Positions 2,879 to 29,954 of a stretch of DNA of 38,185 nucleotides are shown here, piece by piece; position 1 is the stretch's first letter; the number at the start of each line of letters is the position of its first letter. Source of the stretch: Macrostomum lignano (taxonomy: Eukaryota); NCBI GenBank assembly GCA_002269645.1, contig NIVC01002144.1:163022-201206 (forward strand). The letters run 5' to 3'. The notes under the pieces were generated by a model that searched no databases, was not told where the DNA came from, and was given only the letters and a program-made list of their open reading frames with translations. The translations under genes and the position numbers were made by a program.

Positions 2879-3013
2879 TGACATTTTATATAAGTAATAT
2901 TGGCATTCACTCCTATTAACATCTATCAATAGTAGATTTTTTTCAGCGCCGGAACGAAGTAAAGCAGGAACGCGAAATTCAACAACACGAGGCAAATTAT
3001 TGTATATTTATTT

Positions 3014-3762
3014 AGGATCTATTGTAGATCTATCGAAGATCCATTGAGGATCTATTGTGGATCTATTGTAGATTTATTGAGTATCTATTGAAGATCTATT
3101 GAGGATCTATTGTGGATCTATAGTAGATTTATTGAGGATCTATTGTGGATCTATAGTAGATTTATTTAGGATCTATTGTAGATCTATCGAAGATCCATTG
3201 AGGATCTATTGTGGATCTATTGTAGATTTATTGAGGATCTATTGTAGATTTATCGAAGATCTATTGAGGATCTATTGTAGATTTATCGAAGATCTATTGA
3301 GGATCTATTGTAGATTTATCGAAGATCTATTGAGGATCTATTGTAGATTTATCGAAGATCTATTGAGGATCTATTGTAGATTTATCGAAGATCTATTGAG
3401 GATCTATTGTAGATTTATCGAAGATCTATTGAGGATCTATTGTAGATTTATCGAAGATCTATTGAGGATCTATTGTAGATTTATCGAAGATCTATTAAGG
3501 ATATATTGTAGATCTATCGAAGATCTATTGTAGATCTATCGAAGATCTATTGAGGATCTTTTGAGGATCTATTGTAGATTTATCGATGATCTATTGAGGA
3601 TCTATTGTAGATCTATCGAAGATCTATTGTAGATCTATTGAGGATCTATTGTAGATCTATCGAAGATCTATTGAGGATCTATTTTAGATCTATTGAGGAT
3701 CTATTGCAGATCTAGTTAGGATCTACTGTGTATTTACTGATGATCTATTGTAGATTTATTGT
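3014..3762. repeat. Minisatellite, 33-bp unit GAGGATCTATTGTAGATTTATCGAAGATCTATT made of three 11-bp subunits
   Basis: Tandem copies visible; generates the spurious RIYCRFIEDLL ORF. Confidence 0.95.
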
Positions 3763-6800: not shown

Positions 6801-8407
6801 GACATGGGACTCGGGACATGGGACTCGGGACATGGGACTCGGGACATGGGACTCGGGACATGGGACTCGGGACATGGGACTCGGGACATGGGACTCGGGA
6901 CATGGGACTCGGGACATGGGACTCGGGACATGGGACTCGGGACATGGGACTCGGGACATGGGACTCGGGACATGGGACTCGGGACATGGGACTCGGGACA
7001 TGGGACTCGGGACATGGGACTCGGGACATGGGACTCGGGACATGGGACTCGGGACATAGGACTCGGGACATGGGACTCGGGACATGGGACTCGGGACATG
7101 GGACTCGGGAGTTCTAAAAAGTCAGCTCTCACAATGAGGAGGCACTGCCGAATTTTGCAGCAGCCCCCGATACAGCCGAGACAGGCCACTGCGAGAATGA
7201 CCACCCCAGCCACAATGAAGGCGGCGCCAACGGATCCGGTCAGCTGACCGATGCTGCTCAGCAACTGCTGAATCTCAATCTCCTGACCTGTGTGAGACTT
7301 CAGCAAATCCGAAATCGTCTTGAGCCAGTCCTGCACAGAGTCATTCGAGCTTAGCCAGTTCAGGCCAACGGTGAACACGAGACCCAGCGCGAACAGCAGC
7401 AGGCCTACGAGCTGTGAGAGTTCGAGTTGAATTAAAGTAGATTGAATTTGGCTGAGCCAGCATAGCAACCAGAGCTCTAACAGCATAGCGACCAGCGTCA
7501 CAAACAGCATAGCAACCAGAGCTCCAACAGCATAGCAACCAGCCCTACAAACAGCATAGCAACCAGCCCTACAAACAGCATAGCAACCAGCCCTACAAAA
7601 CGGCATAGCAACCAGCCCTAAAAACAGCATAGCAACCAGAGCTCCAACAGCATAGCAACCAGCCCTACAAACAGCATAGCAACCAGCCCTACAAAACGGC
7701 ATAGCAACCAGCCCTACAAACAGCATAGCAACCAGCCCTAAAAACAGCATAGAAACTAGCCCTACAGACAGCATAGCAACCAGCCCTAAAAACAGCATAG
7801 CAACCAGCCCTACAAAACAGCATACATGTAGCAACCAGCCCTACAAAACAGCATACATGTAGCAACCAGCCCTAAAAACAGCATAGCAACCAGCCCTACA
7901 AACAGCATAGCAACCAGCCCTACAAACAGCATAGCAACCAGCCCTACAGACAGCATAGCAACCAGCCCTACAGACAGCATAGCAACCAGCCCTAAAAACA
8001 GCATACATGTAGCAACCAGCCCTACAAACAGCATAGCAACCAGCCCTACAGACAGCATAGCAACCAGCCCTACAGACAGCATAGCAACCAGCCCTAAAAA
8101 CAGCATAGAAACTAGCCCTACAGACAGCATAGCAACCAGCCCTAAAAACAGCATAGCAACCAGCCCTACAAAACAGCATACATGTAGCAACCAGCCCTAC
8201 AAACAGCATAGCAACCAGCCCTACAAACAGCATAGCAACCAGCCCTACAAACAGCATAGCAACCAGCCCTACAAACAGCATAGCAACCAGTGCCGCAGGA
8301 AATAAAAACAGCACAAAAACTTCCCAGCTCACAATGGCAAAGTTGTTGACGGTCACCAGCAGGCAGGCGCAGAGGCAGCTGCAGCATTTCAGCCCAAAGT
8401 TCGACAT
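3863..8407 (-). CDS. Tetraspanin A, 6 exons, about 305 aa
   Basis: Exons 8407-8333, 7411-7133, 6191-6117, 5477-5270, 5151-4961, 3952-3863; all GT-AG, phases 0,0,0,1,0, no internal stop (918 nt). Four hydrophobic segments; EC2 has GCCG, NGTDF, PVTCC, CP and GC (6 Cys); juxtamembrane Cys cluster (LGCIGGCC); ends SNKNQVAPQRSRAV*. Confidence 0.92.
4020..4885. repeat. Minisatellite in Tsp-A intron 5, 16/24-bp units GAACCACTGACCC(ACTGACCC)TAT
   Basis: Tandem copies, with a larger block of about 157 bp duplicated near 4555-4867. Confidence 0.95.
5520..5780. repeat. Minisatellite in Tsp-A intron 3, 39-bp unit containing TGAGTCA
   Basis: TGAGTCA at 5526, 5539, 5567, 5580, 5618, 5657, 5696, 5735, 5772; 39-bp spacing in the core. 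Confidence 0.93.
6232..7110. repeat. Minisatellite in Tsp-A intron 2, 14-bp unit GGGACATGGGACTC
   Basis: About 60 near-perfect copies with occasional 1-bp deletions. Confidence 0.97.
7458..8290. repeat. Minisatellite in Tsp-A intron 1, about 24-bp unit CAGCATAGCAACCAGCCCTACAAA
   Basis: Tandem copies with variants (ACATGT insertions, AGAGCTC). Confidence 0.95.
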
Positions 8408-8659
8408 TTTGTTGAAGAAAAACAATGAAAATTCCAAATAGGACTCAAATAGCTACAATATTGACTGTCACGAGTTAAAAGTTAAATAAGTGCTCAGTCA
8501 CTGCTGTACTCCGGTCACTATTGGCTGTGAAATTTTAGCGGACCAAAATTTTAACCAACTATAGATAGCGATATGTGGCTAGTGCTATGCTATCTAGGTA
8601 ATGCTTGTAAAAATAGACTTTGCACTCATAATCTGCTTGAGTTTTCTAAGGCTCTCCGT

Positions 8660-9880
8660 CACCCTGTTCTCTTTCCCCATGTATACCCTTTCCTGTTCCC
8701 TTTCTCCTATTCTCTTTTCCCTGTTCTCTTTTACCTGTTCTCTTTTACCTGTTCTCTTTCCCTGTTCTCTTTTCCCTGTTCTCTTTTCCCTGTTCTCTTT
8801 CTCCTGTTCTCTTTTCCCTGTTCTCTTTTCCCTGTTCTCTTTCTCCTATTCTCTTTTCCCTGTTCTCTTTCTCCTGTTCTCTTTTCCCTGTTCTCTTTTC
8901 CCTGTTCTCTTTTCCCTGTTCTCTTTTCCCTGTTCTCTTTCTCCTGTTCTCTTTTCCCTGTTCTCTTTTCCCTGTTCTCTTTCTCCTATTCTCTTTTCCC
9001 TGTTCTCTTTTCCCTGTTCTCTTTTCCCTGTTCTCTTTTCCCTGTTCTCTTTCTCCTGTTCTCTTTTCCCTGTTCTCTTTTCCCTGTTCTCTTTTCCCTG
9101 TTCTCTTTTCCCTGTTCTCTTTTCCCTGTTCTCTTTTCCCTGTTCTCTTTCTCCTGTTCTCTTTTCCCTGTTCTCTTTTCCCTGTTCTCTTTCTCCTATT
9201 CTCTTTTCCCTGTTCTCTTTCTCCTGTTCTCTTTTCCCTGTTCTCTTTTCCCTGTTCTCTTTTCCCTGTTCTCTTTTCCCTGTTCTCTTTCTCCTGTTCT
9301 CTTTTCCCTGTTCTCTTTCCCTGTTCTCTTTCTCCTATTCTCTTTTCCCTGTTCTCTTTTCCCTGTTCTCTTTTCCCTGTTCTCTTTTCCCTGTTCTCTT
9401 TCTCCTGTTCTCTTTTCCCTGTTCTCTTTTCCCTGTTCTCTTTTCCCTGTTCTCTTTTCCCTGTTCTCTTTTCCCTGTTCTCTTTTCCCTGTTCTCTTTC
9501 TCCTATTCTCTTTCCCCTGTTCTCTTTCCCCTGTTCTCTTTCCCCTGTTCTCTTTCTCCTATTCTCTTTTCCCTGTTCTCTTTCCCCTGTTCTCTTTCCC
9601 CTGTTCTCTTTCCCCTGTTCTCTTTCCCCTGTTCTCTTTCCCCTGTTCTCTTTTACCTGTTCTCTTTTACCTGTTCTCTTTTCCCTGTTCTCTTTTCCCT
9701 GTTCTCTTTTACCTGTTCTCTTTTCCCTATTCTCTTTTCCCTGTTCTCTTTCCCCTGTTCTCTTTCCCCTGTTCTCTTTCCCCTGTTCTCTTTCCCCTGT
9801 TCTCTTTTCCCTGTTCTCTTTCCCCTGTTCTCTTCCCACTGATCTCTTTCCCCTGTTCTCTTTCCCCTGTTCTCTTTCCT
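8660..9880. repeat. Polypyrimidine minisatellite, 14-bp unit CCTGTTCTCTTTTC, between the two tetraspanin start codons
   Basis: About 1.2 kb of near-pure C/T with about one purine per unit. Confidence 0.97.
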
Positions 9881-10240: not shown

Positions 10241-13200
10241 ATGGCTCGCTCATCGAGAGTGGACCTGAACTGGGCGTTTTGCTGTCTCTGCAGCTCCTTT
10301 CTGGCTGTGGCCAACTGCCTCTTTCTGGTAAACAATATTTTTGTTGATTGCTGATTTACACGTGTCAACTCCACCACTTAGCAAACCTATCAAGTGGTAT
10401 GCACCAGTAAACAGACAAGATTCCAGCTATAAACTGCATCAATAAACACACAAGATTCCAGCCATAAACTGCATCAATAAAAACGCAAGATTCCAGCTAT
10501 AAACTGCATCAATAAACACACAGGATCCCAGCTATAAACTGCATCAATAAACACACAAGATTCCAGCTACAGTATAAACTGCATCAATAAACACACAGGA
10601 TCCCAGCTATAAACTGCATCAATAAACACACAGGATCCCAGCTATAAACTGCATCAATAAACACACAAGATTCCAGCTACAGTATAAACTGCATCAATAA
10701 ACACACAAGATCCCAGCCATAAACTGCATCAATAAACACACAAGATTCCAGCCATAAACTGCATCAATAAACACACAAGATCCCAGCCATAAACTGCATC
10801 AATAAACACACAAGATCCCAGCTATAAACTGCATCAATAAACACACAAGATCCCAGCCATAAACTGCATCAATAAACACACAAGATCCCAGCTATAAACT
10901 GCATTAATAAACACACAAGATTCCAGCTATAAACTGCATCAATAAACACACAAGATTCCAGCTATAAACTGCCTCAATAAACACACAAGATCCCAGCTAT
11001 AAACTGCATCAATAAAAACACAAGATCCCAGCCATAAACTGCATCAATAAACACACAAGATTCCAGCTATAAACTGCATCAATAAAAACACAAGATCCCA
11101 GCTATAAACTGCGATAATAAACACACAAGATCCCAGCCATACACTGCATCAATAAACACCCAAGATTCCAGCTATAAACTGCCTCAATAAACACACAAGA
11201 TTCCAGCTATAAACTGCATCAATAAACACACAAGATTCCAGCTATAAACTGCATCAATAAAAACACAAGATCCCAGCCATAAACTGCATCAATAAACACA
11301 CAAGATTCCAGCTATAAACTGCATCAATAAAAACACAAGATCCCAGCTATAAACTGCGATAATAAACACACAAGATCCCAGCCATACACTGCATCAATAA
11401 ACACACAAGATCCCAGCCATAAACTGCCTCAATAAACACACAAGATTCCAGCTATAAACTGCATCAATAAACACACAAGATTCCAGCTATAAACTGCATC
11501 AATAAAAACACAAGATCCCAGCTATAAACTGCAATAATAAACACACAAGATCCCAGCCATACATTGCATCAATAAACACACAAGATTCCAGCCATAAACT
11601 GCATCAATAAAAACGCAAGATTCCAGCTATAAACTGCATCAATAAACACACAGGATCCCAGCTATAAACTGCATCAATAAACACACAAGATTCCAGCTAC
11701 AGTATAAACTGCATCAATAAACACACAGGATCCCAGCTATAAACTGCATCAATAAACACACAGGATCCCAGCTATAAACTGCATCAATAAACACACAAGA
11801 TCCCAGCTATAAACTGCATCAATAAACACACAAGATCCCAGCCATAAACTGCATCAATAAACACACAAGATTCCAGCTATAAACTGCATCAATAAACACA
11901 CAAGATCCCAGCCATAAACTGCATCAATAAACACACAAGATTCCAGCTACAGTATAAACTGCATCAATAAACACACAAGATCCCAGCTATAAACTGCATC
12001 AATAAACACACAAGATCCCAGCTATAAACTGCATTAATAAACACACAAGATTCCAGCTATAAACTGCATCAATAAACACACAAGATTCCAGCTATAAACT
12101 GCCTCAATAAACACACAAGATTCCAGCTATAAACTGCATCAATAAAAACACAAGATCCCAGCCATAAACTGCATCAATAAACACACAAGATTCCAGCTAT
12201 AAACTGCATCAATAAAAACACAAGATCCCAGCTATAAACTGCGATAATAAACACACAAGATCCCAGCCATACACTGCATCAATAAACACACAAGATTCCA
12301 GCTATAAACTGCATCAATAAACACACAAGATCCCAGCCATAAACTGCATCAATAAACACACAAGATCCCAGCTATAAGCTGCATCAATAAACACACAAGA
12401 TTCCAGCTATAAACTGCAATAATAAACACACAAGATCCCAGCGATAAACTGCATCAATAAACATATAAACTGCCTTAATAAACAAAGCACAAGGGACCCC
12501 AACCGAAAGCTGCATTCCCCACAAACCGCGCCGCTCCCAGATCTTCGGCACCGCTTGCATCGTGCTGAGTGCGGTCTGGCAGCAGTTGCTGCAATCGTCC
12601 AACAACAATTCGTCATTATCACCATCCGCTGAACGTCGACAGCTTGTTGATTGCCTTCAAGCCGTGGCAACCGCAGCCGGCATCAAGGATGTGTCGCTGG
12701 CAGCTCAGAATGCCCTGAGCTCCATTGGACCAATCGATACCGCTCTGCTGATCCTTGGCGTCAGTTTCACTTTGCTGGCTATCTTGGGCAGCTGCAGTTT
12801 GTGCTGCAGATCGAGAGGCGGCCTGGCTGCTGTAAGGCTGTTTAATTGACTTTTTATTGTGTGCTGATTTCTCTTTAAATATAATTGAGTAGTACCCAGG
12901 GACATATAAATGGTATAGACTCTAATGGTTTCTGAGTACATTGGTTAGAGTTAGAGTACACCTGAGCTATGACTCATATTAGCGTCGATCTATACTTTAC
13001 TGAATGATTAGGCCTGGATTGAAGTCATTGGAAGGAAGACATTCAAGTCCATAATATTTTTACCATTTTTAATCAAATTTAAAAAACAAAACTCACTAAT
13101 TATAATTACAGTAAACAAAAAATATTTTCAAATTCACGACATCTATTTTCAGTACCTGGTCATCCTGTCAATGATATTCTTTGCTCAGCTGCTCATCCTA

Positions 13201-13999
13201 ATTCTGCTCTATGGCAGTCCGGAGACTGTAAGTTGAGTTGTTTGTTTAAAAATCCGACTCAGTTTGATGGTTGCAACTGGTTGCTGTGAAAGATTCAATT
13301 TAGACTACTGAGAAAAGTAGGCTCATAAAGATTTGAATCGTAAAATCTCTCAAAGGTCCGAAAAATTCGCTATAAAAGAAACGGCAGCGTAAAAACACGC
13401 ACTGAGAGTGCGCACAACAGTCCCCCGTGACTCGCTTAATCCTGTTAAACTATGCCCACAGTTCGACTCGCTAGTGAGGCAGCTGATGCAGCGCTGCGTT
13501 AGGCGTTACAGCGGCATCAGCTCAGCCAACGGTGCCAGCCTCCTGTTAAACGCTATGCAGATCTACGCCGGCTGTTGCGGCACTGACAATGGGACCGATT
13601 TTCAAAACGCGAACTGGAATCGGAGCTACTCGATGACCCTGTTTAGACAGACGTTTACGCACAGTAAGTGCTTGCAGAAAATGCGTACAGAGACCGCACA
13701 TTATAGCACTTTGGTTGCAATTGCATGCTTCATCCTTTTCTTGTTCAATAATTAAGACAATAACGTATATTTACCATTCCATCATAAAATAATTTGTCTT
13801 CTCAGACCTAACCTACCCTGTGAGCTGTTGTCAGTACGACCTGGCTACACTAGAGCTTCGAGACAGCTTCTGCCCCGTTAACAATCGGCACTTCAGCAAC
13901 CACGCAGTTGGCTGCTATAAGAAAATAATCCAGTTTGTACACGAGTACTTTGAGCGGTACTACATTCTGCAATCGCTGGCCGCTATTGTTGGCATTCAG
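10241..13999 (+). CDS. Tetraspanin B, exons 1-5
   Basis: Exons 10241-10327, 12541-12831, 13153-13227, 13462-13663, 13806-13999; GT-AG, phases 0,0,0,1,0, identical to Tsp-A. Motifs GCCGTDNGTDF, NLTYPVSCC, CP, GCY. Confidence 0.92.
10405..12480. repeat. Minisatellite in Tsp-B intron 1, 35-bp unit ACACACAAGATCCCAGCTATAAACTGCATCAATAA
   Basis: About 58 tandem copies with recurring variants; no unique spacers. Confidence 0.97.
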
Positions 14000-14972
14000 G
14001 TCAGGAGATCGCGTTTGCGCGCCAATTAGCGTAATTATGTGATAACCAACTTTTACATGTACTCCTGAGAACCAGCAGCCTATAGCTACGAGCGTGTGTG
14101 TCATGCATGTCGATCGAATTCCTTTGCAGCCTCTCATTCAATCCTCAAGCTGCCACCGCTACATGTACAGGACTAACTATACTACTCCCCCGTTCACTAC
14201 TAGCACCAACCACCTCTCAGTCCAGTAACGTTCAAATTGTTCCAGCGAGATTCTACTGAATTTTACTATACAGCTCCTTTCGCTTTCAGCCCTAGGGACC
14301 CATAATGGGTAAATAATGCATTTTTACTGGCCATTATAATGACATTGAATGCCACTTAATGGCATTATAATTGCCACTTAATGGCATTATAATTGCCATT
14401 ATAATGCAAATTCTATATATATAAAATGCATTTATAATGTGGTTGCAATTAATTAGAAATAATGCATTTTTAGTCATCTTGCGAGCCATATATACTCGTA
14501 TATATATGAATACATTGCACTTCGTACCTTCGTTTAAATCGGCTCATTAAAACCGTACTTAGTTCTATTCTGGTTTGTCTTACCAAACCATGGGCGATGT
14601 ACACACAATAAGACACACTCAAAATAACACAATTGGTTAGTTTTATGTATAAGACAGGTCTCAACTAAGTGAGTGAGCCGAAAATGTAATATTTATTACC
14701 AAACAAAGAAGCCAAATGTAAAAAAAAAATTTGTGTCCCCGGAGTTTTACGTAAAAGCAATTAAACATAAAAAACTGCAAAAATGTGACAAAGAATTAGG
14801 TGTATCTAAACAAAGCGCACGGCATATGAGAGAAAACGTAAAACATAACATGTAGGATAAATATAGCTGAGCATTAGGCGCGCATGTTTTGTGAAAAAGG
14901 GCTTTTTAGTTTAGAAAAACTAACAAGAAACAAAGCTTGCTTAAGTACAAGTACTAGATGGTACTGGGTCTA

Positions 14973-15127
14973 CGATGTTAGCCAGCCGGCGTTTGCTAGC
15001 CGAAAGTTTGCCAGTTAGTGTCTCTTTCTTGGTCCCGTCTAATTCCCCAGTCATATTTTCTTCCTGTGTCCTAGCAATAGAGCTTTTAGAATAAGCCTAG
15101 CACACACACATCGGCTGGCTAACATCG
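14973..15127. repeat. 16-bp perfect inverted repeat pair (possible small MITE) just downstream of the transposase ORF
   Basis: CGATGTTAGCCAGCCG at 14973-14988 and its reverse complement at 15112-15127; no clear TSD. Confidence 0.5.
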
Positions 15128-15289
15128 ACAAAAGCTACACAACAATAGCTACCCAGCAGATAAATCAGGAATACGTACCAGAAAAAATTTCATGCAATGA
15201 TTACATTGACAACCAGGACTACTTACAGAATAGAAAACGAGACAAGACAATGACCCTGAAAAACTGACGCGCGTTTGAAGTTATCTGAG

Positions 15290-17686
15290 CTAATCGTGCT
15301 CACACTCTTCCAACAGGGGTACCAGACAAAAACTGCCTGATGGCAAGTTCGGAAAGTTGACATCGACTCGAATGCACCTCGCAGCCACATCAGTGAGACG
15401 TATGCAATTGTAATTTTCCCGAGTGGGTTCCTGACTCGTAAAGATAAGCATATTTCGGAGTGGAACATCAGATGTAAAAAAAGCAAGAAAGATTGCTTGT
15501 TCAGATGCACTAGCACCAATATTGGTAAAATCCGGAACAGCATTGAACAGTAAGTCGATTAAACGACATTGTGGAGTCAGAAAAGAGCCAAAGATTTTGC
15601 TATCGGCAAAATGATTAATAGCAAAATATGAATTTGATACATCCAGGACATACGAACTACATGTTTTTAAAGTGCAATCCGCAGAAGTGGTTGTTAAAAT
15701 TTTACCCCCAGAAGCGCCTAGAGTTCGATTTTCGCGCTCAGGAGGATTGCAGTAGTGCTTAGCGATGACAAGGAGTGCATCAGAAATTGAGGGATTGGAG
15801 CCTGCAGCAGGTTGCAGTGAATACAATAGCACTTTTAGCCAGAAAAACTTTTCGGAAATTTGCTTTCCATGAAATCGACTGCCAAAATGAAGCATATTAA
15901 AGCCATGCATAGCTGACTCAAAGGGAAACATTGATGCACAATACAGAGGACCAAATCGTTCATACTGGTCGGGTAGATGATAGAGAAGATGAAAATTAAG
16001 AAGCATAACACGTTCGCCAAAAAACTCAGGACACAGGTTAAGAAACATATTGCACAGACGTTTTAAAGTTGAAACACAAGAATTTTGCGAGTACAGCAAG
16101 TTATAAATAGAATTAAGAAGAAGGAGCAGGCCCCTAAGTTCGGGATTTTCGATTCGTGGAAGCAGAATTGATGGAAACAGATACAGAGCAAAAATCTTGT
16201 ATGTTTTCGCTTTCCAAAGTGAGAGCTGACTAATTGGAGGAACATTGCTAATACCTTGGGGAAGTTTCAGTTGCATAATCTGAGAGTCGATTACATTGAC
16301 AGATGCTGAGCCTAGCACACGGTAATGATTGGGATTGCAGCTTTTAGTCTTAGAATCAGTCAAGAAGGCTAGAATGTGTTTTACTTGACCTTCCCAGAGA
16401 CAATGCATAGAATCAACAATGAAATTTTCTGGAAAACGAATGATTTTGAGAAGAGCAGTTTCGCGTTTGATTCCAAAATAATCCTTAAGCCCTTGAGCCT
16501 TGAGAACTGTGAGATGCTGCGCATGCATGGCATTAGTTCGAAGCGGAATTCCATGGACAGCGGGGAAGACACGAACTTGGCCTTTTTCTGACACCTTTAG
16601 AGACTTGCCAGGTAGGATGCATCTGGGACAAGCAAATTGTCCGTTGAATTGCTTGATTCCAAAAAGGTGAGATAAAGCGGGCAAATCGCAGGTAAAAAAC
16701 GAGAAGTGAAGAAAAAACGTCACATTCCTTACTTTTACACACGAAGGCAAGCGATTTAAAATAGTAGGCAAAAACTTTTCAAAATTCGGCTTTCCTCGAT
16801 TGGTAAACAAAGCGATTGTGATAATGTTGACAAACTTCTGGCGTAATCTAACAGGCAAATTGAGGCACAGTGCACAGAAAGGCCACACAGACATTTCAGA
16901 AACTTTAAAGAAGTTTGCTCCGTCAGCCGAAAGAAGAAAATACAAGTGAAAAATGTCAGGAGATGAGCCGGTTTCTAGTTCATTGCTAACAGCAGAGTTC
17001 AGAATGTCAGTTTGAAATCCTCGCCTTAGCTCACGCTGGTAAGATAAAATATCATTTAAATGCCTTTCAACTGTAAGCTCCACCTGATGGTTTACATTTA
17101 AGAGCCATAGTCCCTCGAAAGAGTCGACTGGATGTTCACTACAGTTTATAAGTAGACACGCTAAACAAACTTTCACAACGAAGTCCGGTTTTAAAATGAA
17201 TGAACGAAGCAGAACCGCTTCCATTGCTTTGTAAGATGTAGGTAAAGCAGCGCGAGGAGACAGAATGGAAATGAGGCGAAGCATGTTTTTAACAGCTTTC
17301 TTGGAAACGTTCGACAAGATCATCCACAACATTAGAAGGGCACATTTGACCTCCATAGAGATACCTTGGATACAAAAGACAGAAAGAAGGTTACTATCCT
17401 CATCCGCAGAAAATATTTCAGGGTGCTCGATATCAGATGGACCAGCTGCCTGCACTTCATTCTCGTCATCAGCAGGAATTGCAATAGTCGGTTGCTCGCC
17501 GACGTTTGCTTGAATTGCAGCGGAAGAGCTCGAATCGCTGTATTCACCCATGGATGTGTCAATCGAATGTGTACTTGAATCAACCGACATCGAGACATAT
17601 GACGACCCAGAGGACAGACTTTCCGACGACCCAGAGGACAGACTTTCCGACGACCCAGAGGACAGACTTTCCGACGACGAACTCAT
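15290..17686 (-). CDS. CACTA/EnSpm-family transposase, 798 aa, uninterrupted
   Basis: Motifs SADGANFF..SVWP...LNLP..RQK..NI; TCDLPA...GQFACPRC; VDSMHCLWEG; WKA; NFHLLYHLPDQYERFGPLYCASMFPFES match the Tnp2/Transposase_21-like pattern. A short upstream exon is possible (in-frame acceptor near 17720). Confidence 0.9.
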   Translation of the reverse strand: MSSSSESLSSGSSESLSSGSSESLSSGSSYVSMSVDSSTHSIDTSMGEYSDSSSSAAIQANVGEQPTIAIPADDENEVQAAGPSDIEHPEIFSADEDSNLLSVFCIQGISMEVKCALLMLWMILSNVSKKAVKNMLRLISILSPRAALPTSYKAMEAVLLRSFILKPDFVVKVCLACLLINCSEHPVDSFEGLWLLNVNHQVELTVERHLNDILSYQRELRRGFQTDILNSAVSNELETGSSPDIFHLYFLLSADGANFFKVSEMSVWPFCALCLNLPVRLRQKFVNIITIALFTNRGKPNFEKFLPTILNRLPSCVKVRNVTFFLHFSFFTCDLPALSHLFGIKQFNGQFACPRCILPGKSLKVSEKGQVRVFPAVHGIPLRTNAMHAQHLTVLKAQGLKDYFGIKRETALLKIIRFPENFIVDSMHCLWEGQVKHILAFLTDSKTKSCNPNHYRVLGSASVNVIDSQIMQLKLPQGISNVPPISQLSLWKAKTYKIFALYLFPSILLPRIENPELRGLLLLLNSIYNLLYSQNSCVSTLKRLCNMFLNLCPEFFGERVMLLNFHLLYHLPDQYERFGPLYCASMFPFESAMHGFNMLHFGSRFHGKQISEKFFWLKVLLYSLQPAAGSNPSISDALLVIAKHYCNPPERENRTLGASGGKILTTTSADCTLKTCSSYVLDVSNSYFAINHFADSKIFGSFLTPQCRLIDLLFNAVPDFTNIGASASEQAIFLAFFTSDVPLRNMLIFTSQEPTRENYNCIRLTDVAARCIRVDVNFPNLPSGSFCLVPLLEECEHD

Positions 17687-18146
17687 AATTTCAACTTCAG
17701 TTCTACGAGTGTTAGGATAGACTGAAAAGTTTGGAGAAAATTACGTACCCGTGCCATCGAAATAAGAATGTGCACCATCATCTATCGATAAATATGAAAT
17801 GAAGTGGAATAAATTAGCTCGGTGGCGTTAAAGTTGAAGGAGTTTAGATTCTTCCACATATATACATTTTGAACGACTACGGAAATCATTAAGGGTATCC
17901 TAACTACCCATACAAAGAGTGCCAACACTTTTCAAACGCAACAGTTATTATTCTAAAAAAATAATTAAGGTAGTCGCTTCATTTTATATTAAAAAAACAC
18001 TACAGAGTAAGAGTTTGACTTTAGCGCAGATAACGTAAAATAGGGATCGATTCAGTTCAAAAACGTTATAGTTTGTTACATGTCGAATGGCAGTTGGGTG
18101 ATTGCATCTTCAGTTAAAATATTGCGACACACGTTTAGCCGTCAGT

Positions 18147-21100
18147 CTAATCACCGGCCTTTCGCTTGCGGAAGGTTGACTCTGGACCAAGTCGATTCAG
18201 AGAGTCTTTGACGGCTGTCCACGCAGAAACCGTTTGATCCCTCGGGATATTGAAGGCCTTGTTCAGAATGCCTAGTTTTTTTTAAGAAAGATTTTATAGT
18301 AGCAGCAAATTCACACAAACATTTTCCAACAATGGAATGGCTACAGTGAGCCAGTTTGAATTTTTAGCTTTAAAAGACTATATAGAATGACCTGCATCCA
18401 TCTAATGCCCACAATACTAAGTCAGTTGCCAAAAAACATTCAGTTGCAAAGAAATTGTATCGCTTACTCTTAAGATGGTCTTGCACTTCTCCTGGAGCCT
18501 TTGGCCTTTGTGTCGTGCCTTTGTACTCTCCGAAAACATGCGATTGCACATACTCGACGCCATACCTCGCAGAAGCATATGCCCTGATGAACTTCGACGT
18601 CGTTGTACGAGGCAGATCTGAGAAATTGCAAACTCGCCCATCGTGGCCTTCAAATTCCTACGAAAAAGTACAAAGAAAATTGGTACTCAGGACCGATTGT
18701 TTGGATTATGTCATGATAAATGTCAGTGAAATGTGAAAACGTCAAGCCACATGAAGAAGAGCGAAAAATAAGAAAAACAGTAAAGTAAAATGGCAAAGTA
18801 AAGCATATAATAATTTTATAGTAAATGGTTAGTAAAGAAAGTAAATTAATTTGCACAGAAACTGAGAAACCTACCTCCTTAAGGAAATCAGCTGATACCA
18901 TTTGATGCAAGCTGGATGATGAAGTGCGAATCTTCCTCAGTTTGTGAGCGATGAACCGCTTCAAACTGTCTGAAACATTTGGTGTTTCACATTTGTACTA
19001 TACTGATAGTGATTACATAAGCAGCACGAAATGCAGGATTTGTGAGTAAAAAAGTTGTATTACACTGAGATAATGAGAATAAAGCATAAAAACAAAAGCA
19101 CAAGAAAGAAATAATTAAACCTTACCCATTCCTTCCTGAAATTCAGCCAGTGTGAGAGGCTTGGAATTTGTGGGATCGTTTGCACTTGCTGCCTTTGCTG
19201 ATTCATGAGCCTGAAGAACTTGAGGAAGTAGTTCCGGTGGTAAGGCACGCTGTTCCTCACTTGCAATTAAAGCCAATGATGCCTCAGAATTTTGGTGTCT
19301 GTCTTCAACATGAGTACCAGCTGTCCTTGGCCGCTTGTTTGCTAGACTGCCTTGAGATTGCTTCCTAGCACGAGAATGAGCAGCTGTAGGTGTCGAAACT
19401 GGACTTGGGCTTACAAAAGAAACCTGAGTAGGAGGCGGAGTAGGCTGCCAGGTCTCATCATCATCCGAATCGTCAATATCACCTGCATCTTCATCACTTG
19501 AGTCTTCTTGTTGTCTCATGAAGACTTTCATATGAGACTGGACATGATCAGAGAGCTCGGAGTTCTCCTTGTTTTCAGTTATGAATGCATCAAGCTCCTT
19601 CTCAAGGTAGATCATTTTTGACCATGGTTCAGCTGCAATGAACATGCCATTGAAAATGCCATCCTTGAGAGCAAGTGGGTAGTCCTCACCCTAAAATAAA
19701 AATGTGATTCATTATTAGATTTTGAGCTAATATTAGACCAAATTAATTTTTTAATTAAGAATTATAAACAAACTAAATAGAAAATTCTTTTTAGAATAGT
19801 TAACAAAATAGATATAGCCTATTAGAAAGTTAGACAAACTAAACAAAAGAGTCCTTTAGAAAGATAGACAAGCTAAAGAGAATAAATCCATTGGAAAAAT
19901 AGACAAACTTAACTAAAATAAAACTTTAGATAGCTTAATAGAGTTGGCAAATATAGCCTATTAAAATACTAGGAAAACTAAAAGTATAAGAAATATTAAA
20001 ATAGAAAACTAAAGCACTGGACAATAGTTCAAATAGTAAACTTGCTATTGGATAGAATATAGGGCCTACCTTATCAGCAAATAGACCTTCCTATGAATTG
20101 AACACCTTAGGCTTAGCATAGGAATAAAATAGCTCATAGATAAATAGATATATAAACATACTGAGACCACTATATAAAATGTTATAAAAATCAATGAAGG
20201 CAGTCAAGTTTGAAAATGAATACATTATACAAAATATATATTAAAAAAATAGACAATAAGACATTTAAAAATGGCCAAAATTCTATTGGGTTGTTAGGAA
20301 AGTTCTGTCCGTTTTTTATTTTTCTATGCAGAGGATCATGAAGCTGTGTTGGATCCAATACTTGTGTATGCATATACAGCCAGAGTTGTGGTCATTCTAA
20401 CCAAGTCATTTGCTTTTCAGCGCCCAATTATGGCCAGAAATTTTGAATTAAACAGCATCGCTCTAAGGCAGTGCATGCTATATGATTTTCTAGCAGGTAT
20501 TACAGCAGCCGAATCGACTCGACGCCTGTGCAGTGCATTTGGCCAGGATGCTGTCTCTGACCGCACAGCCCGTCGTTGGTTTGATCGCTTTCGCAGCGGC
20601 GACTACAGCCTTGCTGACGAACCTCGCCCTGGACGCCCATCTGAGATAGACACTGAGCTGCTGCGGACACTTGTGGAGGCCAATCCGCACCAGACTACAC
20701 GAGAGCTGGCAGCCACTCTTGGGTGCTCCCATGTGCAAGTCGCTGAACACCTGGCTGCCATGGGCAAGAAAAGCAAGCTCGGACAGTGGACCCCCCATGA
20801 CCTGACTGACAGGGACCGTCAAAGCCGAGCAGACATTTGCACCTCACTGCTCTCCTACAAGAGAACAACAGACTGGCTGGCCTCAATACTCACTGGCGAT
20901 GAGAAGTGGGTGATGTACGTTAATATACACCGCAAGCGCCAGTGGGTTGATGCCGGCAAACCGCCACAGCCAGAGCCAAAGGCCCCACTGCACCCTAAGA
21001 AGGTGATGCTCTGCTGTTGGTAGGACAGTGAAGGAGTTGTATACTTCGAGCTGCTGCCGCCCAACACCAGCATCACCGCCGAGCTCTACTGTAACCAGCT

Positions 21101-24100
21101 GCAGAATGTGGCCGACTGCCTCCGCACACAGCGTCCAGGGCGTCAGCATGTTCGCTTCCTTCATGACAACGCTCGGCCGCACACCGCCAATTTGACCCGA
21201 CAAAAGCTGCTGGATCTGGGCTGGGAAGTGCTGCCCCACCCACCGTACAGCCCCGATCTGGCCCCTACAGACTACCATCTTTTTCGAGCGCTGCACCATC
21301 ATCTGAAAGAGAAAACGTTTGAAGATGACAAAGGGGTCAAGGACTGCATTACTAACTTTTTTGAATCACAGCCCAAGGATTTCTACAGAGCTGGCATCCA
21401 AAGTCTGCCCTCTCGTTGGCAGAGGGTCATCGATTGCGATGGCAATTATTTTACTGAGTAACACTGCTGCATTCCTATAAAAACTCGCTCCAACATATTT
21501 TAGTCAAAACGGACAGAATTTTCCTAACAGCCCAATATATTCTCTCTATACTTAGAATAGAGAACATATAGAAAAGAAAGGAAAGCTAGCCAAACCAACC
21601 ATAGTTCTTTATGCATGAGTTAGCTAATCATACTCTAACATTGATAGCAACTAAACAGCCTATTTCAAGCACTAAAAAGTAGTCTTTTGCAAATTAAACA
21701 GCCTTGGCCTAGTATTACTAAAACTATAAAAAGATGAAATCTTAGAATAAGCCTAATTCACTAAAAAATACCTAACTAGTTCTATAGTTGGGCATCAGGG
21801 CCTACTCCCTACATGGCCTAAACTAGGCATATGGCTATAGAAGCCCAGCCTACTAGTAAAACAATATAAAAAACTATTTAGCTTCATTTAACTTTAGGCC
21901 CTAATCCATAGTTCGGAAGAGGGCATGTACGCCGGAAATTTCCGGGGTACAGTCAAGAAATTTGGCGTACATGTTGGCGTACAAATAGTAATTTTCTAAG
22001 GCTTTTGGCGTACATGTTTAACCATGATTATTAATTTGGTGTGTAACATGCACCAAAAAACAAAAAATTCGTAACCTAGTGAAATCAATAACAGTTACAA
22101 AGTCGTTCATTATGCATTTACTGTAAAATTTCACGATTGATGCAGAACTGACTTTCGTGTTTTTTGCTTGTGGTGAAGTTGTAATTTTAACAAAAAATGC
22201 ACAAATTTTACTTAAATTTTATAAATAAACTGTGTACATATAAATCTGTCACTTTTTAATAGTTCTTACTAATAAATAAAAAAGTTACTTTCCGTTTTCA
22301 ACATAGACAATTTAAAATTAAATATGTTTTTATCGGGCCGTTTTGGGCGTGAGACATTTGATATTCCAGATAGATACAACCTGGACATTCATTTAGGTTG
22401 TATCGGACTCAAATGCGCGAGTCATCCCAACCTTCGCGGCCCAGCAGTTCCTTGGATGCCCGTCAAAACGGCCACACGCGGAACGGCCACACGACAAAAC
22501 GGCCACACCGTTAAAACGGCCACACGACAAAACGGCCACATAAAACAAAAAGGGTTGCAGATCGATTGCTCATGAGATCCAGCTTATGACATCAAAATGC
22601 AAAAGAAGTAAATGCATTGAGATATTGTGAAATTTATGTAGGCCGAAAAGGATCCGAAAAGGAAGCACCAGAGAAGCGAAGACGAAATTGTTTTTTATGG
22701 AGCGACCAGCAGTTATGCAAATTTTTAAAAGATGCTAAAATAGTTGTGTAAGAAAGCCTCTTCCTCTTCTTCCAGTACTGTTGGAAGCTCCAGCTCAATT
22801 GTTGGTTCGTCAATGCCAACATCCAATTCTGTGCTATGCAACTTAAACAAGCTGTCTACAAGTGTCTCAGAGTCAGCCTCGAGGCCTGAAATGTAGAGAA
22901 TTGGAATGTAGAAAAAAATCTGCTTTATCTCAACTTCACATGCATCGACTTACCTAAACCTTCTGGTAACAACTTCAGGTGCGTCAGATGCTGGTATCCT
23001 TATTCGCAAATGTAAGGCAGGTCGCTCCTCAGCAGCTAAGCTGGGTTCCGCTGCCGCACTGTGCTCAGCAGCTGAGCTGGGTGCTAGCAGGCAATTTGGA
23101 CAAAACCATGGCATCGTCTCATTCTTCATGGCATTGTAGCGAGCTATAGAAACGGCTGCGTCTCCTGCAGTAGCAGCAGATATACAATAATTACCAATTA
23201 CAGTTAATTCAAATAATTACAACTATAACAGCATACTATAAACAGCAACTCACCTTTCAGACACAATGCATGCTGGCGAGGTCTGACTCTAAGTAGACAC
23301 TTTGGACAACTGTCGTCCATTGTTAAAAATGAAAAATGAAAAAATAAAAAATTATTACATCGTGTGGCCGTTTTGTCGTGTGGCCGTTTTGACGGTGTGG
23401 CCGTTTTGTCGTGTGGCCGTTCCGCGTGTGGCGCGTGTTACGCGGAATAGCCACACAACAAAACGGCCACACCGTTAAGCAATGAAGCAGCAATGAACCA
23501 ATGGGATGCAATTGCGGAGTCATAGGGTGCACTCCATGAAGCCTTTCGAGCTGAAAATCCTCGGTGCAAGATTCATGAGCAGCTACAGTACCAAATGTTT
23601 GGAAGTGATTTTGTTTTCGATCTCCTATAAGTAATATATTTACATAGAAGACAAATTTAATAACTGCACTGTAAAACGACAACGTCACAAAGATATATGG
23701 CGTACATCGGCGTACACAAAAAAAATTGGTAGTTTTTTTTCCGGGGTACATACAGAGTGTTCCGAACTATGGGCCCTAATAAATATATTTGTAGGAGTTA
23801 ATAGATATTTGATAGTTAGGCACACAAAACTACATTCATTTTAAGCCATATGCACTCAAGCAATTTATTTATTTTTTCAAATCCTGCAGAATTTTGTATA
23901 CAATATGCAATAGCATTTGTAACAATTACTAGGATTAGGCCTGGGCCTAGTAAGTAAGCAAAAAATTACTTACAAAAATGAATTTCACATCAGGCTCATT
24001 ATGGCTAAGTGCAAGACTGCCACGGGAAAAGTTATGATAAGTTCTTGTCTTTCGAATGAAGAATAGTAGGTACTTCGAATCATAAAATGACGCAGCAGAA

Positions 24101-24171
24101 TTTGCCAATCGTTGCACTGGTTTCACTACTCTATTCGAAGAGCGCCTACTTGAACCAGCCGCAAGATCCAT
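18147..24171 (-). CDS. Spliced accessory gene of the CACTA element, 5 exons, about 390 aa, C-terminal BEN/DUF4806-like helical domain
   Basis: Exons 24171-23974, 19690-19126, 18969-18875, 18657-18468, 18271-18147; GT-AG, phases 0,1,0,1, open throughout (1173 nt). Acidic/Pro-rich middle; C-terminus VFGEYKGTTQRPKAPGEVQDHLKSILNKAFNIPRDQTVSAWTAVKDSLNRLG resembles BEN-type domains. The domain call is by eye. Confidence 0.72.
20286..21535 (+). mobile_element. Mariner (Tc1/mariner, D,D34D) element, 1250 bp, nested in intron 1 of the CACTA accessory gene
   Basis: 30-bp TIR TTGGGTTGTTAGGAAAGTTCTGTCCGTTTT with 2 mismatches to the right end; TA TSD at 20284-85 and 21536-37. Confidence 0.96.
20430..21461 (+). 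pseudogene. Mariner transposase (343 codons) with one in-frame TAG
   Basis: WTPHDL, TGDEKW, HDNARPH, YSPDLAPTDYHLF; 34 residues between the second and third Asp. The single stop at 21021-21023 replaces an expected Trp (CCW*D), and the same frame continues to TAA 21461. Confidence 0.95.
21906..23772. mobile_element. Non-autonomous DNA transposon, 1867 bp, 8-bp TSD, nested in the CACTA element
   Basis: TIR CCATAGTTCGGAA / TTCCGAACTATGG with further inverted similarity (ATGTAC.CCGGAAA, GGCGTACA motifs). TSD GCCCTAAT at 21898-21905 and 23773-23780 (could be read as 9 bp). Superfamily unresolved (MULE, hAT or P). Confidence 0.85.
22462..23476 (-). mobile_element. Inner foldback/MULE-like derivative with modular AAAACGGCCACAC inverted arms, carrying a PHD-finger-like gene remnant
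   Basis: Arms 22462-22540 and 23363-23432 are about 70-bp inverted copies built from a repeated 13-mer. Between them, minus-strand exons 23320-23254 (MDDSCPKCLLRVRPRQHALC) and 23164-22954 (SIARYNAMKNETMPWFCPNC). Outer termini are not resolved. Confidence 0.6.
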
Positions 24172-24849
24172 TCAAGATCCACCAACTCTTAGTGTCTGAA
24201 GTCAATAAATTCAAACCTATAATAATAATATATTAACTGAATTGGAATAATTAGAAATTGGAATAATTGTCACACCAGATTGATTAATGCAATTAAATTG
24301 TTGAGAGGATGTCATAAAATAGTGAAGAAAACAAAGCTTTTATTTCGACAATCAAAATCGATTGAACAAGCTATGTTATAGAGAAATAACAAAAGCGACC
24401 CAATTTTTGCGTACGAATGTAAGTTTGTTTGCTAGATAAGAACCTGAAATAGAAATTTAATTACGAATTTCGCTTCGAGCAACAAAATAATCCAGCACGC
24501 AATTAGACCGCCATTTTAATTTCAATTTGTGATGGTCTAATTCGCTACGGCTGGATATAAAAAATGCATTTGTAATTTGATAATTGTTACAGAAAATAAT
24601 GCATTTTTATCGCACCACGTTTTATTATTTGTTCTTCAAAGTTAGCAACGGAAGTATAATTTATAAATACACAGATGCGCAATAAAGCCAATCTTGAACT
24701 AAATTCATGCTTATTTTGTTAAATAGTGTAGATAGAACTTTTACTAAAAATGCATTAAAAATGCACGTACATATAATGCACCAAGAATGCACTATTTTGT
24801 CATTAGATTCTGAAAATGCATTATTTGTCCATTTTGGGTCCCTAGGGAG

Positions 24850-24927
24850 GCGTTGCTGATTGCTGGAATTCTCGTCATTTTTCGCGATATTACCGAGAAA
24901 AAAAATAAGGTGCAGCCAGCTGTTTAA
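24850..24927 (+). CDS. Tetraspanin B, exon 6 (second half of TM4 and tail), displaced 10.6 kb by the CACTA insertion
   Basis: Reads ALLIAGILVIFRDITEKKNKVQPAV*, aligning with Tsp-A exon 6 LLLVVGSLVIYSSESSNKNQVAPQRSRAV*. In frame (phase 0) with exon 5. Removing 14290-24849 rebuilds the acceptor ctcctttcgctttcAG|GCG. Confidence 0.85.
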   Translation, partial: ALLIAGILVIFRDITEKKNKVQPAV

Positions 24928-27639: not shown

Positions 27640-29954
27640 CTAAGTATTTTAGATATATCCATCAAGTGCTTTGTAAAGGCTTTAGTCTTTAGAATTTAGA
27701 AATTTTCTAACAATACAATAGTATACAGCATTCTACTGTATCCCTACATTTAATTATTTTCTTTGAAAATTTTAGTTTCTATTTAGTTTATTGATAAATA
27801 CTATAATGGATTAAATAGAAAGATTTATGAAGTTCAACAGATAAATTGATAATTAGGCCTATCAACTAGTAAAACTAGTGAATGGGAAATCCTAGGCCTA
27901 TAAATAAACAGTTGTACAATAAAACAGCAATAAAAATGGTTGTAGATATAGGTAAATGGCCAGTCATGGTTTTAGGTATATTTATCAATATTGTGTTTGA
28001 GTTATTGAGTCTACTGCATTTGCCCTGCGTTGACTTTATAGTCAGGAAGATAGCCTTTTCATGGAAAATTTGGGAGTAAAAAGAGGTTAAAGGTGCACTG
28101 TGCCAGCATAATATGGTGCAAGAAAAAAATTGGCACTTTTTTGTAAAAGACAAAATCTTATGACCAGACAATATTTTCTCTAATAGAAAATTAGCATATA
28201 ACTAGCAATCTAGTGTAGCCCCCCTTTGGGGTGCCTACTAAGAAAAGAGCAAAAACAGTTCATGGAAAACAATAAAAAGGCACATTTTCTTAAATACCAG
28301 TTCCTTCTTCACTTTTAAAAATCACCTTATTCGTGTAAAATTGTCATAGTCAAAGATGTTTGCAAAGTAAAAGAACCATTTTTTCTTTAAAATTAACAAC
28401 AGACTACAAAATATAGCTTCCCCTAAATAGAAAATATTCCCAAGACAGCAAGCACCCCCTCCAAAAGTAAACAACCCCAGATAGCAAGCATTCTGTAGAT
28501 AGCAAGCATCTCCCAGATAGCAAGCATCTCCCAGATAGCAAGCATTCTGCAGATAGCAAGCATCTCCCAGATAGAAGCATCCACCCAGATAGCAAGCATC
28601 TCCCAGATAGCAAGCATTCTGTGATAGCAAGCATCTCCTAGATAGAAGCATCCACCCAGATAGCAAGCATTCTGTAGATAGCAAGCATTCTGCAGATAGC
28701 AAGCATCTCCCAGATAGAAGCATCCACCCAGATAGCAAGCATCTCCCACATAGCAAGCATTCTGCGATAGCAAGCATCTCCCAGATAGAAGCATCCACCC
28801 AGATAGCAAGCATTTTGTAGATAGCAAGCATTCTGCAGATAGCAAGCATCTCCCAGATATTGTTGAAGCATCCACCCAGATAGCAAGCATCCTGCAGATA
28901 GCAAGCACCTCCCAGATAGTATAGAAGCATCCTGCAAATATAATAAGCACCCCCCCCCCCAGATATTATAGAAGAATCCACCTAGATAGCAAGAATCCCT
29001 AAATAGCAAGCATCCTTAGATAGAAAGAATCCCATACATGTAGCCAATACCCCCTCTCCCAAATAGCAAGTATCCCCCCTCGAGAGCAAGCATCCTCCAG
29101 ATAGCAAGCATCCGCAAGACAGCAAGTAGCTAGTGCAAATGTTACCTCTGCTAATGCAATAATAGCTTTCTTAGGTTGTGCAACAATCCATGTCTTAGCG
29201 AGCGCAATAATCTCTTTTAGATAGCGCAATAATTGGCTTCTCAGCTAGTGCAATAATATTTTACTCATCAAGTCCAAAAATCAATGTCTCAGCTAGTGCA
29301 ATAGCCTTTTCTAATCTAGTGCAATAATCCTTGGCTTATCAAGTGCAATAATCCTTGGTTTATCTAGTGCCATAATCCAGGTCTTTTTAATTAGTCCTTT
29401 AATAAAAGCTTTCAATGAAAAAATTTATGCTACTTTTATTTTTTATTTTACACTACTAAGATTCAAACCTAGGTTGCTGCATTAGCAGTCCAATCTGTTC
29501 ACCTCTATTCTAGCTCTCATTGAAATTATAAAGGAATTTGTAGCACTTATAATTCAACACTCACACCAAGTCAATTGAGTAAAAGTCACACGAAGCAGTT
29601 ATGACATAATCAGTTTCTTAGGCAAGTTAGTACCAGTCTCTATTAAAGTTAGCAATGTGGTTACGCAATATAAATCAAGTATTGTACTATGCTTCCACAC
29701 TGCGTTTTCAATACTGTGATGCAATTCAATTCAGTGTCAAAATTCAGCCAGTATATACAGACAATAAATAAAAAGCCTATTGTGATGCAATCTATTTCAG
29801 AATCAGAATTCAACCAGTCAGTTTTTCCCTAGCATTCCTACAATGCATTTCAAGTTGAAAGAGCTGCTTGACCTTTGCAAAAAAGCTTGTTTTTCGAATA
29901 TTTAATCCCTTTAGCATCGAGCAATTTCTTAGCCACGTTGCATGTACTGTCAAG

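Follow-up and report, generated by a model that had tools for sequence, protein, structure and literature searches.

A Mirage-type transposon on the last splice acceptor of a Macrostomum lignano tetraspanin gene, and its likely effect on that gene

What happens to a gene when a transposon inserts exactly at a splice acceptor and duplicates its AG? This question is raised by a 38,185-nucleotide stretch of the genome of the flatworm Macrostomum lignano (contig NIVC01002144.1 of GenBank assembly GCA_002269645.1, positions 163,022 to 201,206 of the forward strand). We call this whole stretch the window and number its positions from its first letter. In the window, a DNA transposon interrupts a tetraspanin gene, Tsp-B, at the end of its last intron. 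The most likely outcome appears to be a truncating loss-of-function allele, to which we assign a probability of about 70%.

Insertion site and target-site duplication

We located the transposon by reading its junctions in the window sequence, and it extends from 14290 to 24847 (10,558 bp). The left junction reads ...ctcctttcgctttcAG/CCCTAGGGACCC (at greater length, ...acagctcctttcgctttcAG/CCCTAGGGACCCATAATGGG...), with AG at 14288-14289 and the first base of the element at 14290. The right junction reads ...GGGTCCCTAGGG/AG/GCGTTGCTG (at greater length, ...CATTTTGGGTCCCTAGGG/AG/GCGTTGCTGATT...), with the last base of the element at 24847, AG at 24848-24849, and the exon beginning at 24850. AG is present at both flanks, and intron 5, the last intron of Tsp-B, has the left one as its acceptor. 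(A first-pass annotation of this DNA had placed the transposon at 14270-24927; the element does lie inside that range, which also takes in 20 nt of the intron and all of exon 6.) Both ends of the element are CCCTAGGG, which is the start of a 35-nt terminal inverted repeat (TIR) whose two copies, 14290-14324 and 24813-24847, are 91% complementary. The 19-nt tip of the TIR occurs twice in the window, both times at an end of the element, and 0 occurrences are expected by chance. If we remove the element and one AG, then the reconstructed empty site reads ...ctcctttcgctttcAG/GCGTTGCTG, which makes a canonical, correctly phased acceptor. The features at the junctions, including the target-site duplication (TSD), are:

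14290 to 24847, minus strand: transposon, an 8,683-bp canonical Mirage-type element plus a private 1,875 bp (a nested element and its 8-bp TSD)
14290 to 14324, plus strand: left TIR, CCCTAGGGACCCATAATGGGTAAATAATGCATTTT; the host reading frame begins CCC TAG
24813 to 24847, plus strand: right TIR, ending ...GGGTCCCTAGGG; the tAG at 24843-24845 is a possible competing acceptor that would add 4 nt to the exon
24848 to 24849, plus strand: right copy of the TSD, AG, in frame before exon 6 and in the context gGAG

We then compared the ends of other copies. An identical transposase is encoded on nine M. lignano contigs (GCA_002269645.1); eight of these were retrieved and, together with the window copy, make up family 1, whose members lie at unrelated loci. 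In all nine copies, CCCTAGGG is kept at both ends and a matching dinucleotide lies immediately outside. The dinucleotides of the eight non-window copies are TA, AA, CG, GT, TT, TT, AT, and CA. For the window copy, the dinucleotide is CT in the orientation of family 1, corresponding to AG on the plus strand of the window. A second Mirage-like family (family 2; L011-L018, for example L012 6864-13521) has elements of about 6.66 kb whose ends, CCCTACTCTC...GAGAGTAGGG, are not palindromic but have the CCCTA tip in common with family 1. All seven complete copies of family 2 have 2-bp TSDs (GA, TG, TA, TG, TA, TA, and TC). Counting both families, which are related, each of the 16 complete copies thus has a matching dinucleotide at its left and right flanks, where about 0.065 would be expected per copy by chance (P ~1e-19). 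Therefore, the TSD has a length of exactly 2 bp, and CCC/GGG are the true ends of the element.

The 2-bp TSD, and its identity with the duplicated acceptor AG of the last intron of Tsp-B, were both proposed in the first-pass annotation, and the junctions and the other copies bear them out. That annotation had also proposed checking the other copies for an AG bias alongside the 2-bp length. The pooled spectrum (n = 16: AG/CT, four TA, AA, CG, GT, two TT, AT, CA, GA, two TG, and TC) contains AG/CT once and has only a weak tendency towards T and A, and we reject an AG target bias given such varied TSDs. Because the family has no target preference for AG, the choice of AG here is apparently due to chance. 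Likewise, the exact landing on the acceptor is a coincidence for an element with a 2-bp TSD; a gene of about 4.2 kb offers five such positions.

Predicted splicing of the interrupted gene

Tsp-B has six exons, with GT-AG borders at every intron, and a product of 308 amino acids. Its parts are:

10241-10327, 12541-12831, 13153-13227, 13462-13663, and 13806-13999, plus strand: exons 1 to 5, with GT-AG borders and 283 open codons
14000 to 14289, plus strand: intron 5, 290 nt; its pyrimidine tract is intact, and its acceptor, cAG at 14288-14289, is the left TSD copy
24850 to 24927, plus strand: exon 6, ALLIAGILVIFRDITEKKNKVQPAV and then a stop codon; it encodes the second half of the fourth transmembrane segment (TM4) and the cytoplasmic tail

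Exon 5 ends in ...GGC ATT CAG, followed by gtcagg, in phase 0 and in the middle of TM4 (protein ...AAIVGIQ). Exon 6 (78 nt) continues with ALLIAGILVIF RDITEKKNKVQPAV and a stop codon, so that the exon 5/6 junction lies in mid-TM4; it completes a hydrophobic TM4 of 25 residues, with a charged tail after it. The 308-residue product matches Pfam's Tetraspanin family (7e-24, residues 20-287, spanning the exon 5/6 junction) and has four hydrophobic segments, YAGCCG (the CCG motif), and further pairs of cysteines.

The window holds a second tetraspanin gene, Tsp-A, on the minus strand (about 3870-5453 and 7300-8437), head-to-head with Tsp-B. The two are 37-43% identical in the large loop and have an intron position in TM4 in common; the introns of Tsp-A are filled with satellite repeats. 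As in Tsp-B, this intron of Tsp-A is in phase 0 (after ...LLVLQ/gttagc), and the last exon of Tsp-A, LLLVVGSLVIYSSESSNKNQVAP..., is preceded by ttttcAG. The common intron position and the similar last exon support our assignment of exon 6 and its start at 24850.

We translated the product of each of the three acceptors that exon 5 could be joined to. Splicing to 14290, the original acceptor, gives ...GIQ, a proline, and a stop (CCC TAG; 284 amino acids). Splicing to 24846, after the tAG of the right TIR (AG at 24844-24845), adds 4 nt and shifts the frame (303 amino acids). Splicing to 24850, after the duplicated AG, is in frame and restores the wild-type 308 amino acids. On these points the translations agree with the first-pass annotation, which predicted a Pro-stop within TM4 after the original acceptor and its pyrimidine tract, read the duplicated AG as in frame, and noted that an AG 4 nt earlier would compete with it and shift the frame.

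Which acceptor would be used? All five native acceptors of Tsp-B are CAG. The original acceptor of intron 5 has C at position -3, lies 290 nt from the donor, and has a pyrimidine fraction of 0.74, the best in the gene. The duplicated AG has G at -3, with GGG directly before it (gGAG), and the tAG lies 4 nt upstream. In human data, pathogenic mis-splicing is commonly caused by losing the pyrimidine from position -3, and the spliceosome normally takes the first AG that it meets beyond the branch point (PMC9284458). Also, the sense strand has an ATTAAA 256 nt into the element. We rate loss of function as the most likely outcome because of the intact cAG near the donor, the poor gGAG duplicate, the tAG upstream of it, and the ATTAAA.

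The sequence of events that we propose is as follows. An autonomous transposon of the Mirage group would have cut the AG at the end of intron 5 with a 2-bp stagger, and would have integrated there in the antisense orientation; gap repair would then have duplicated the AG. After the insertion, the original acceptor, with its branch site, pyrimidine tract, and cAG all intact, would still be used. Exon 5 would be joined to CCC TAG, and the protein would end at residue 283 plus a proline, lacking the second half of TM4 as well as the tail. The transcript may terminate inside the A/T-rich element or be degraded. The insertion would then be an ordinary insertional allele, probably null and polymorphic.

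Several points weigh against this account. The splicing outcome is judged from sequence features and in part by vertebrate rules, and the mobility of the family is judged from the identity of its copies. The right end of the element has a T-rich tract and two AGs, which is compatible with some splicing across the element. When we compared the reconstructed 308-residue tetraspanin to a collection of 5.8 billion proteins, there were zero matches, and hence no uninterrupted allele or homeologue. Similarly, a BLAST comparison of the window's flanks to 18 M. lignano loci (the window's own contig was not among them) gave no match and no allelic contig.

We considered four alternatives. First, the transcript could be spliced to the TAG in the right TIR (24844-24845), which would leave only GG and the AG of the TSD before exon 6 and give the 303-residue protein with an unrelated C-terminus. 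The pyrimidine fraction upstream of this tAG is 0.74, and the geometry of a TAG with 2 nt after it at the end of the element is explained by the CTA that the terminus, like that of CACTA elements, has at positions 3-5. But the intact proximal acceptor at 14288-14289 would have to be skipped, and we consider this outcome unlikely. The allele would still be defective.

Second, 13999 could be joined to 24850 in some transcripts, with the element absorbed into an intron 5 of 10.85 kb and the 308-residue protein produced. Insertions of dSpm and Ds in maize can be removed from the pre-mRNA via acceptors in their ends. The AG at 24848-24849 is in frame, and it follows a fairly T-rich stretch: the pyrimidine fraction of the final 30 nt of the element is 0.63, as it is at three native acceptors. 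However, the original acceptor is untouched and lies just 290 nt from the donor, while the duplicated acceptor is a gGAG after GGG instead of the CAG at all five native sites. The better tAG comes 4 nt earlier, and splicing normally goes to whichever AG is first (PMC9284458). The other copies give no sign of selection for AG at the TSD. We think that such a rescue is quite unlikely. By the same token, we see only a slim chance that the transposon is tolerated as an instant extension of the intron, which would make this a leaky or tissue-dependent tetraspanin allele produced by a still-mobile, RAG1-like family with atypical CCC ends in place of CAC.

Third, the 78-nt segment might not be the true last exon, or Tsp-B might already have been a pseudogene, so that the insertion had no effect on a protein. 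Taken by itself, a run of 25 open codons says little (about 30% by chance), and the Tsp-B protein is absent from the protein collection that we searched. Yet the reconstructed acceptor is canonical and correctly phased, exons 1 to 5 all have open frames and GT-AG borders, and the segment completes a hydrophobic TM4 and adds a charged tail, with the Pfam match crossing the junction as far as residue 287. Tsp-A, with its common intron position and similar last exon, also argues against this alternative, which seems very improbable.

Fourth, the element could instead end at GGGACCC/GGGTCCC, with TA, CTAG, or the palindromic CCCTAGGG as its target and the AG flanks a coincidence, as the first-pass annotation had itself envisaged; the palindrome makes a single copy compatible with such boundaries, but we give them almost no credence and reject a CTAG or TA target, given the TSDs of the 15 other complete copies, with CCCTAGGG at both ends of 9 of 9 family-1 copies beside differing matching dinucleotides, and with the non-palindromic end of family 2, CCCTACTCTC, also flanked by 2-bp repeats.

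The transposon and its family

The transposase gene is antisense to the host gene. Besides its TIRs, the element has these parts:

14310 to 14475, no strand: left subterminal repeats, with the palindromic core AATGCATT at 14315, 14425, and 14461
14350 to 14393, no strand: 22-bp tandem pair in the left subterminal region
15290 to 17686, minus strand: transposase open reading frame (ORF), intronless, 798 amino acids
18147 to 19645, minus strand: second gene of the element, upstream of the transposase and on the same strand (coordinates mapped from another copy, L001 8078-9561)
20284 to 21537, plus strand: passenger mariner with 32-nt TIRs, encoding a Mos1-type protein (HTH_48 and DDE transposase) with one in-frame stop
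21906 to 23772, no strand: private nested non-autonomous element, 1,867 bp, with TIR CCATAGTTCGGAA; its TSD is at 21898-21905 and 23773-23780
24555 to 24830, no strand: right subterminal AATGCATT motifs, at 24563, 24598, 24749, and 24815

The nine copies of family 1 are nearly identical: just 4 of 8,683 columns are variable, two of the four are single-base indels, and the window copy has no private substitution. Therefore, the amplification of the family and the insertion into Tsp-B are very recent. By this measure family 1 is very young, and it is probably active and still mobile. The transposase ORF is intact in 8 of the 9 copies. (In the copy on NIVC01002814.1, L008, a 1-bp deletion at the equivalent of about 15741 leaves 666 amino acids; this protein, P0004, is annotated as "hypothetical protein," PAA55061.1.) The retrieved copies of family 1 lie mostly outside of called genes. 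The copies of family 2 are about 99.2-99.9% identical, and several contain nested insertions.

Because the mariner, itself dead, is present in 9 of 9 copies, it must have been acquired before family 1 amplified and then spread as a passenger. The nested element is absent from the eight other copies. Its TSD is 8 bp (GCCCTAAT), which suggests a hAT-like or similar family that may also have been mobile recently; an apparent 16-bp TSD was rejected, as the BLAST overlap resolves to 8 bp. The nested element also contains 70-nt inverted arrays of AACGGCCACAC units, at 22471-22540 and 23363-23432. The second gene, as called in other copies, encodes a spliced product of 304 amino acids (the largest ORF for it in the window is 19115-19645), which is acidic, is rich in serine and proline, and has no match in Pfam.

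Of nine occurrences of the palindromic octamer AATGCATT in the window, seven are within about 300 bp of the ends of the element, so the subterminal repeats are probable candidates for transposase-binding sites. Family 2 has subterminal motifs of the TCCATG type instead. The families differ in these motifs yet have the CCCTA tip in common, and we propose that the catalytic site may recognize the tip, and that a DNA-binding part specific to each family may recognize the subterminal motifs.

We then examined the transposase. (Versions of 798, 805, and 809 amino acids have the same sequence and differ only in the called start.) The 798-residue ORF matches Pfam's DUF1258 (E = 8e-14; 52.2 bits, with a cut-off of 33.1), but only across residues 200-368. 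DUF1258 has been equated with the Mirage group and is close to Transposase_21 of CACTA elements (PMC3985635), and Repbase has merged Mirage into EnSpm/CACTA (PMC4455052). Word-indexed searches for homologs, with the single sequence or a 2-sequence profile, found just 2-3 proteins. An exhaustive HMMER search gave 8,571 representative relatives, and we aligned 63 of them; DUF1258 is found in 58 of the 63, Transposase_21 in 42, and DUF4218 in 19. (The transposase of family 2, P0011, is about 33% identical to that of family 1. The closest relative from outside Macrostomum, P0002, is from metagenome contigs of 2.7-3.8 kb, which are too short for element ends.) D255, D334, C353, C356, H428, H570, and E590 are invariant among the 63 relatives, and H566 is at least 90% conserved. 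D255, D334, and E590 are candidate catalytic residues, with C353-x2-C356 and H566-x3-H570 between them. The pattern D-D-C(2)C-H(3)H-E is the signature of the clade of CACTA, Mirage, Chapaev, and Transib (PMC12730594).

An AlphaFold model built from the 63-sequence alignment (mean predicted local distance difference test, pLDDT, 81.9; predicted template-modeling score, pTM, 0.84) matches the RAG1 core (E = 7e-11) with a template-modeling score of 0.55-0.63 on the length of RAG1, over about 600 columns and at 12-15% identity. It also matches HzTransib (E = 4e-6). There were no other significant matches in PDB.

Taken together, the DUF1258 match, the signature residues, the 2-bp TSD, the TIRs with subterminal motifs, and the predicted RAG1/Transib-like core identify this, at the level of sequence, as an autonomous transposon of the CACTA-Mirage-Chapaev (CMC) superfamily, Mirage group. 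TSDs in this superfamily range from 2 to 4 bp (bioRxiv 10.64898/2026.08.26.747230). The one feature that departed from the superfamily, among those tested, was the CAC(TA)...GTG termini (for CAC..GTG ends, see PMC6004678): both M. lignano families have 5'-CCCTA...TAGGG-3'. As CA..TG ends hold only "in most cases" (PMC12730594), CCCTA is a variant terminus and not grounds for exclusion. So the first-pass identification as a CACTA transposon stands for the broad CACTA/EnSpm superfamily and for a large, autonomous element of the cut-and-paste type, but not for the termini. In the literature, we found no work on Macrostomum that deals with CMC or Mirage elements.

Could excision restore Tsp-B? Enzymes like RAG1 and Transib normally leave excision footprints. 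If this transposase behaves likewise, then cleavage would probably leave hairpinned flanks and hence footprints. An excision that kept both AGs would be expected to read cAGAG/GCG, where splicing at the first AG would put the frame out by 2 nt. Somatic restoration by excision is thus speculative, and because a footprint is expected, we do not favor simple restoration as the default.

The rest of the window has an unusually high density of tandem repeats, including a 35-bp unit repeated 58 times in intron 1 of Tsp-B, 14-bp arrays of 63 and 87 copies, and further arrays with periods of 16-39 bp. Many of these create long spurious ORFs. The remaining features are:

2090-2871, 3009-3714, 4017-4868, 6236-7110, 7458-8290, 8662-9877, 10400-12463, 28476-28919, 33819-34183, and 35558-36175, no strand: tandem-repeat arrays
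506 to 1474, minus strand: retrotransposon gag/aspartyl-protease ORF, at the left edge of the window
34167 to 34760, plus strand: exon similar to ornithine/arginine decarboxylase (Orn_Arg_deC_N, 2.4e-9), near the right edge of the window

M. lignano is a model flatworm for regeneration and transgenesis, and the main value of this locus is for annotation: it gives a young, probably active family of Mirage type, with its exact ends and TSD, plus a related second family. The two families also suggest that a transposase lineage like that of RAG1 and Transib can use CCCTA ends in place of CAC. If it is active, an endogenous cut-and-paste element might be a tool for mutagenesis or transgenesis, and might also destabilize laboratory lines. 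The Tsp-B allele itself is a simple natural test of whether the flatworm spliceosome chooses the original or the duplicated acceptor.

Comparison with known systems

The first-pass annotation had raised, as an alternative to a knockout, an Introner-like use of the TSD as a new splice site. As in the Introners of Micromonas, Aureococcus, dinoflagellates, and fungi, a TSD supplies a splice-site dinucleotide (PMC11282704). However, Introners are short, non-autonomous elements that bring one splice site of their own and make new introns within exons, with hundreds to thousands of genic copies (PMC11282704). The M. lignano element is 8.7-10.6 kb, is autonomous, has few copies, and lies at the border of an existing intron; its TSDs are varied and its left end, CCCTAGGG, has no GT donor. 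We reject Introner membership for such a large autonomous element, given the unbiased TSDs in 16 copies and the lack of a donor at its end.

The likeness to Transib and RAG1 is in the predicted fold and in the C(2)C and H(3)H motifs (PMC12730594). On the other hand, the identity is just 12-15%, the TSD of Transib is 5 bp, and Transib and RAG1 both need CAC at the cleaved end, where the M. lignano element has CCC. Also, we saw no RAG2-like partner.

With En/Spm of maize (CACTA), the element shares the signature D-D-C(2)C-H(3-4)H-E (PMC12730594), and its relatives match Transposase_21/tnp2. Both have subterminal repeat motifs (PMC2613891) and a second gene beside the transposase. In both, the terminal ...CTA reads TAG on the opposite strand, which makes a possible acceptor at each end. 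In the maize allele bz-m13, dSpm is reportedly spliced out through a terminal acceptor of this TAG type. Unlike En/Spm, the M. lignano element has a TSD of 2 bp rather than 3 bp, CCCTA rather than CACTA, and a transposase ORF without introns.

The closest likeness that we describe is to MIRAGE1 of C. elegans, which Repbase classifies under EnSpm/CACTA and Yuan & Wessler under "CMC." Its transposase belongs to DUF1258 (PMC3985635), and it is also autonomous, with two ORFs (PMC5395297). This comparison covers the transposase family and the ORFs of MIRAGE1; the 2-bp TSD of the M. lignano element is within the 2-4 bp of CMC elements. The M. lignano element differs from MIRAGE1 in its flatworm host, its canonical length of 8.7 kb, its mariner passenger, and its own termini, CCCTAGGG. 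In sum, the locus adds to CMC/Mirage a young family with CCC ends from a model flatworm.

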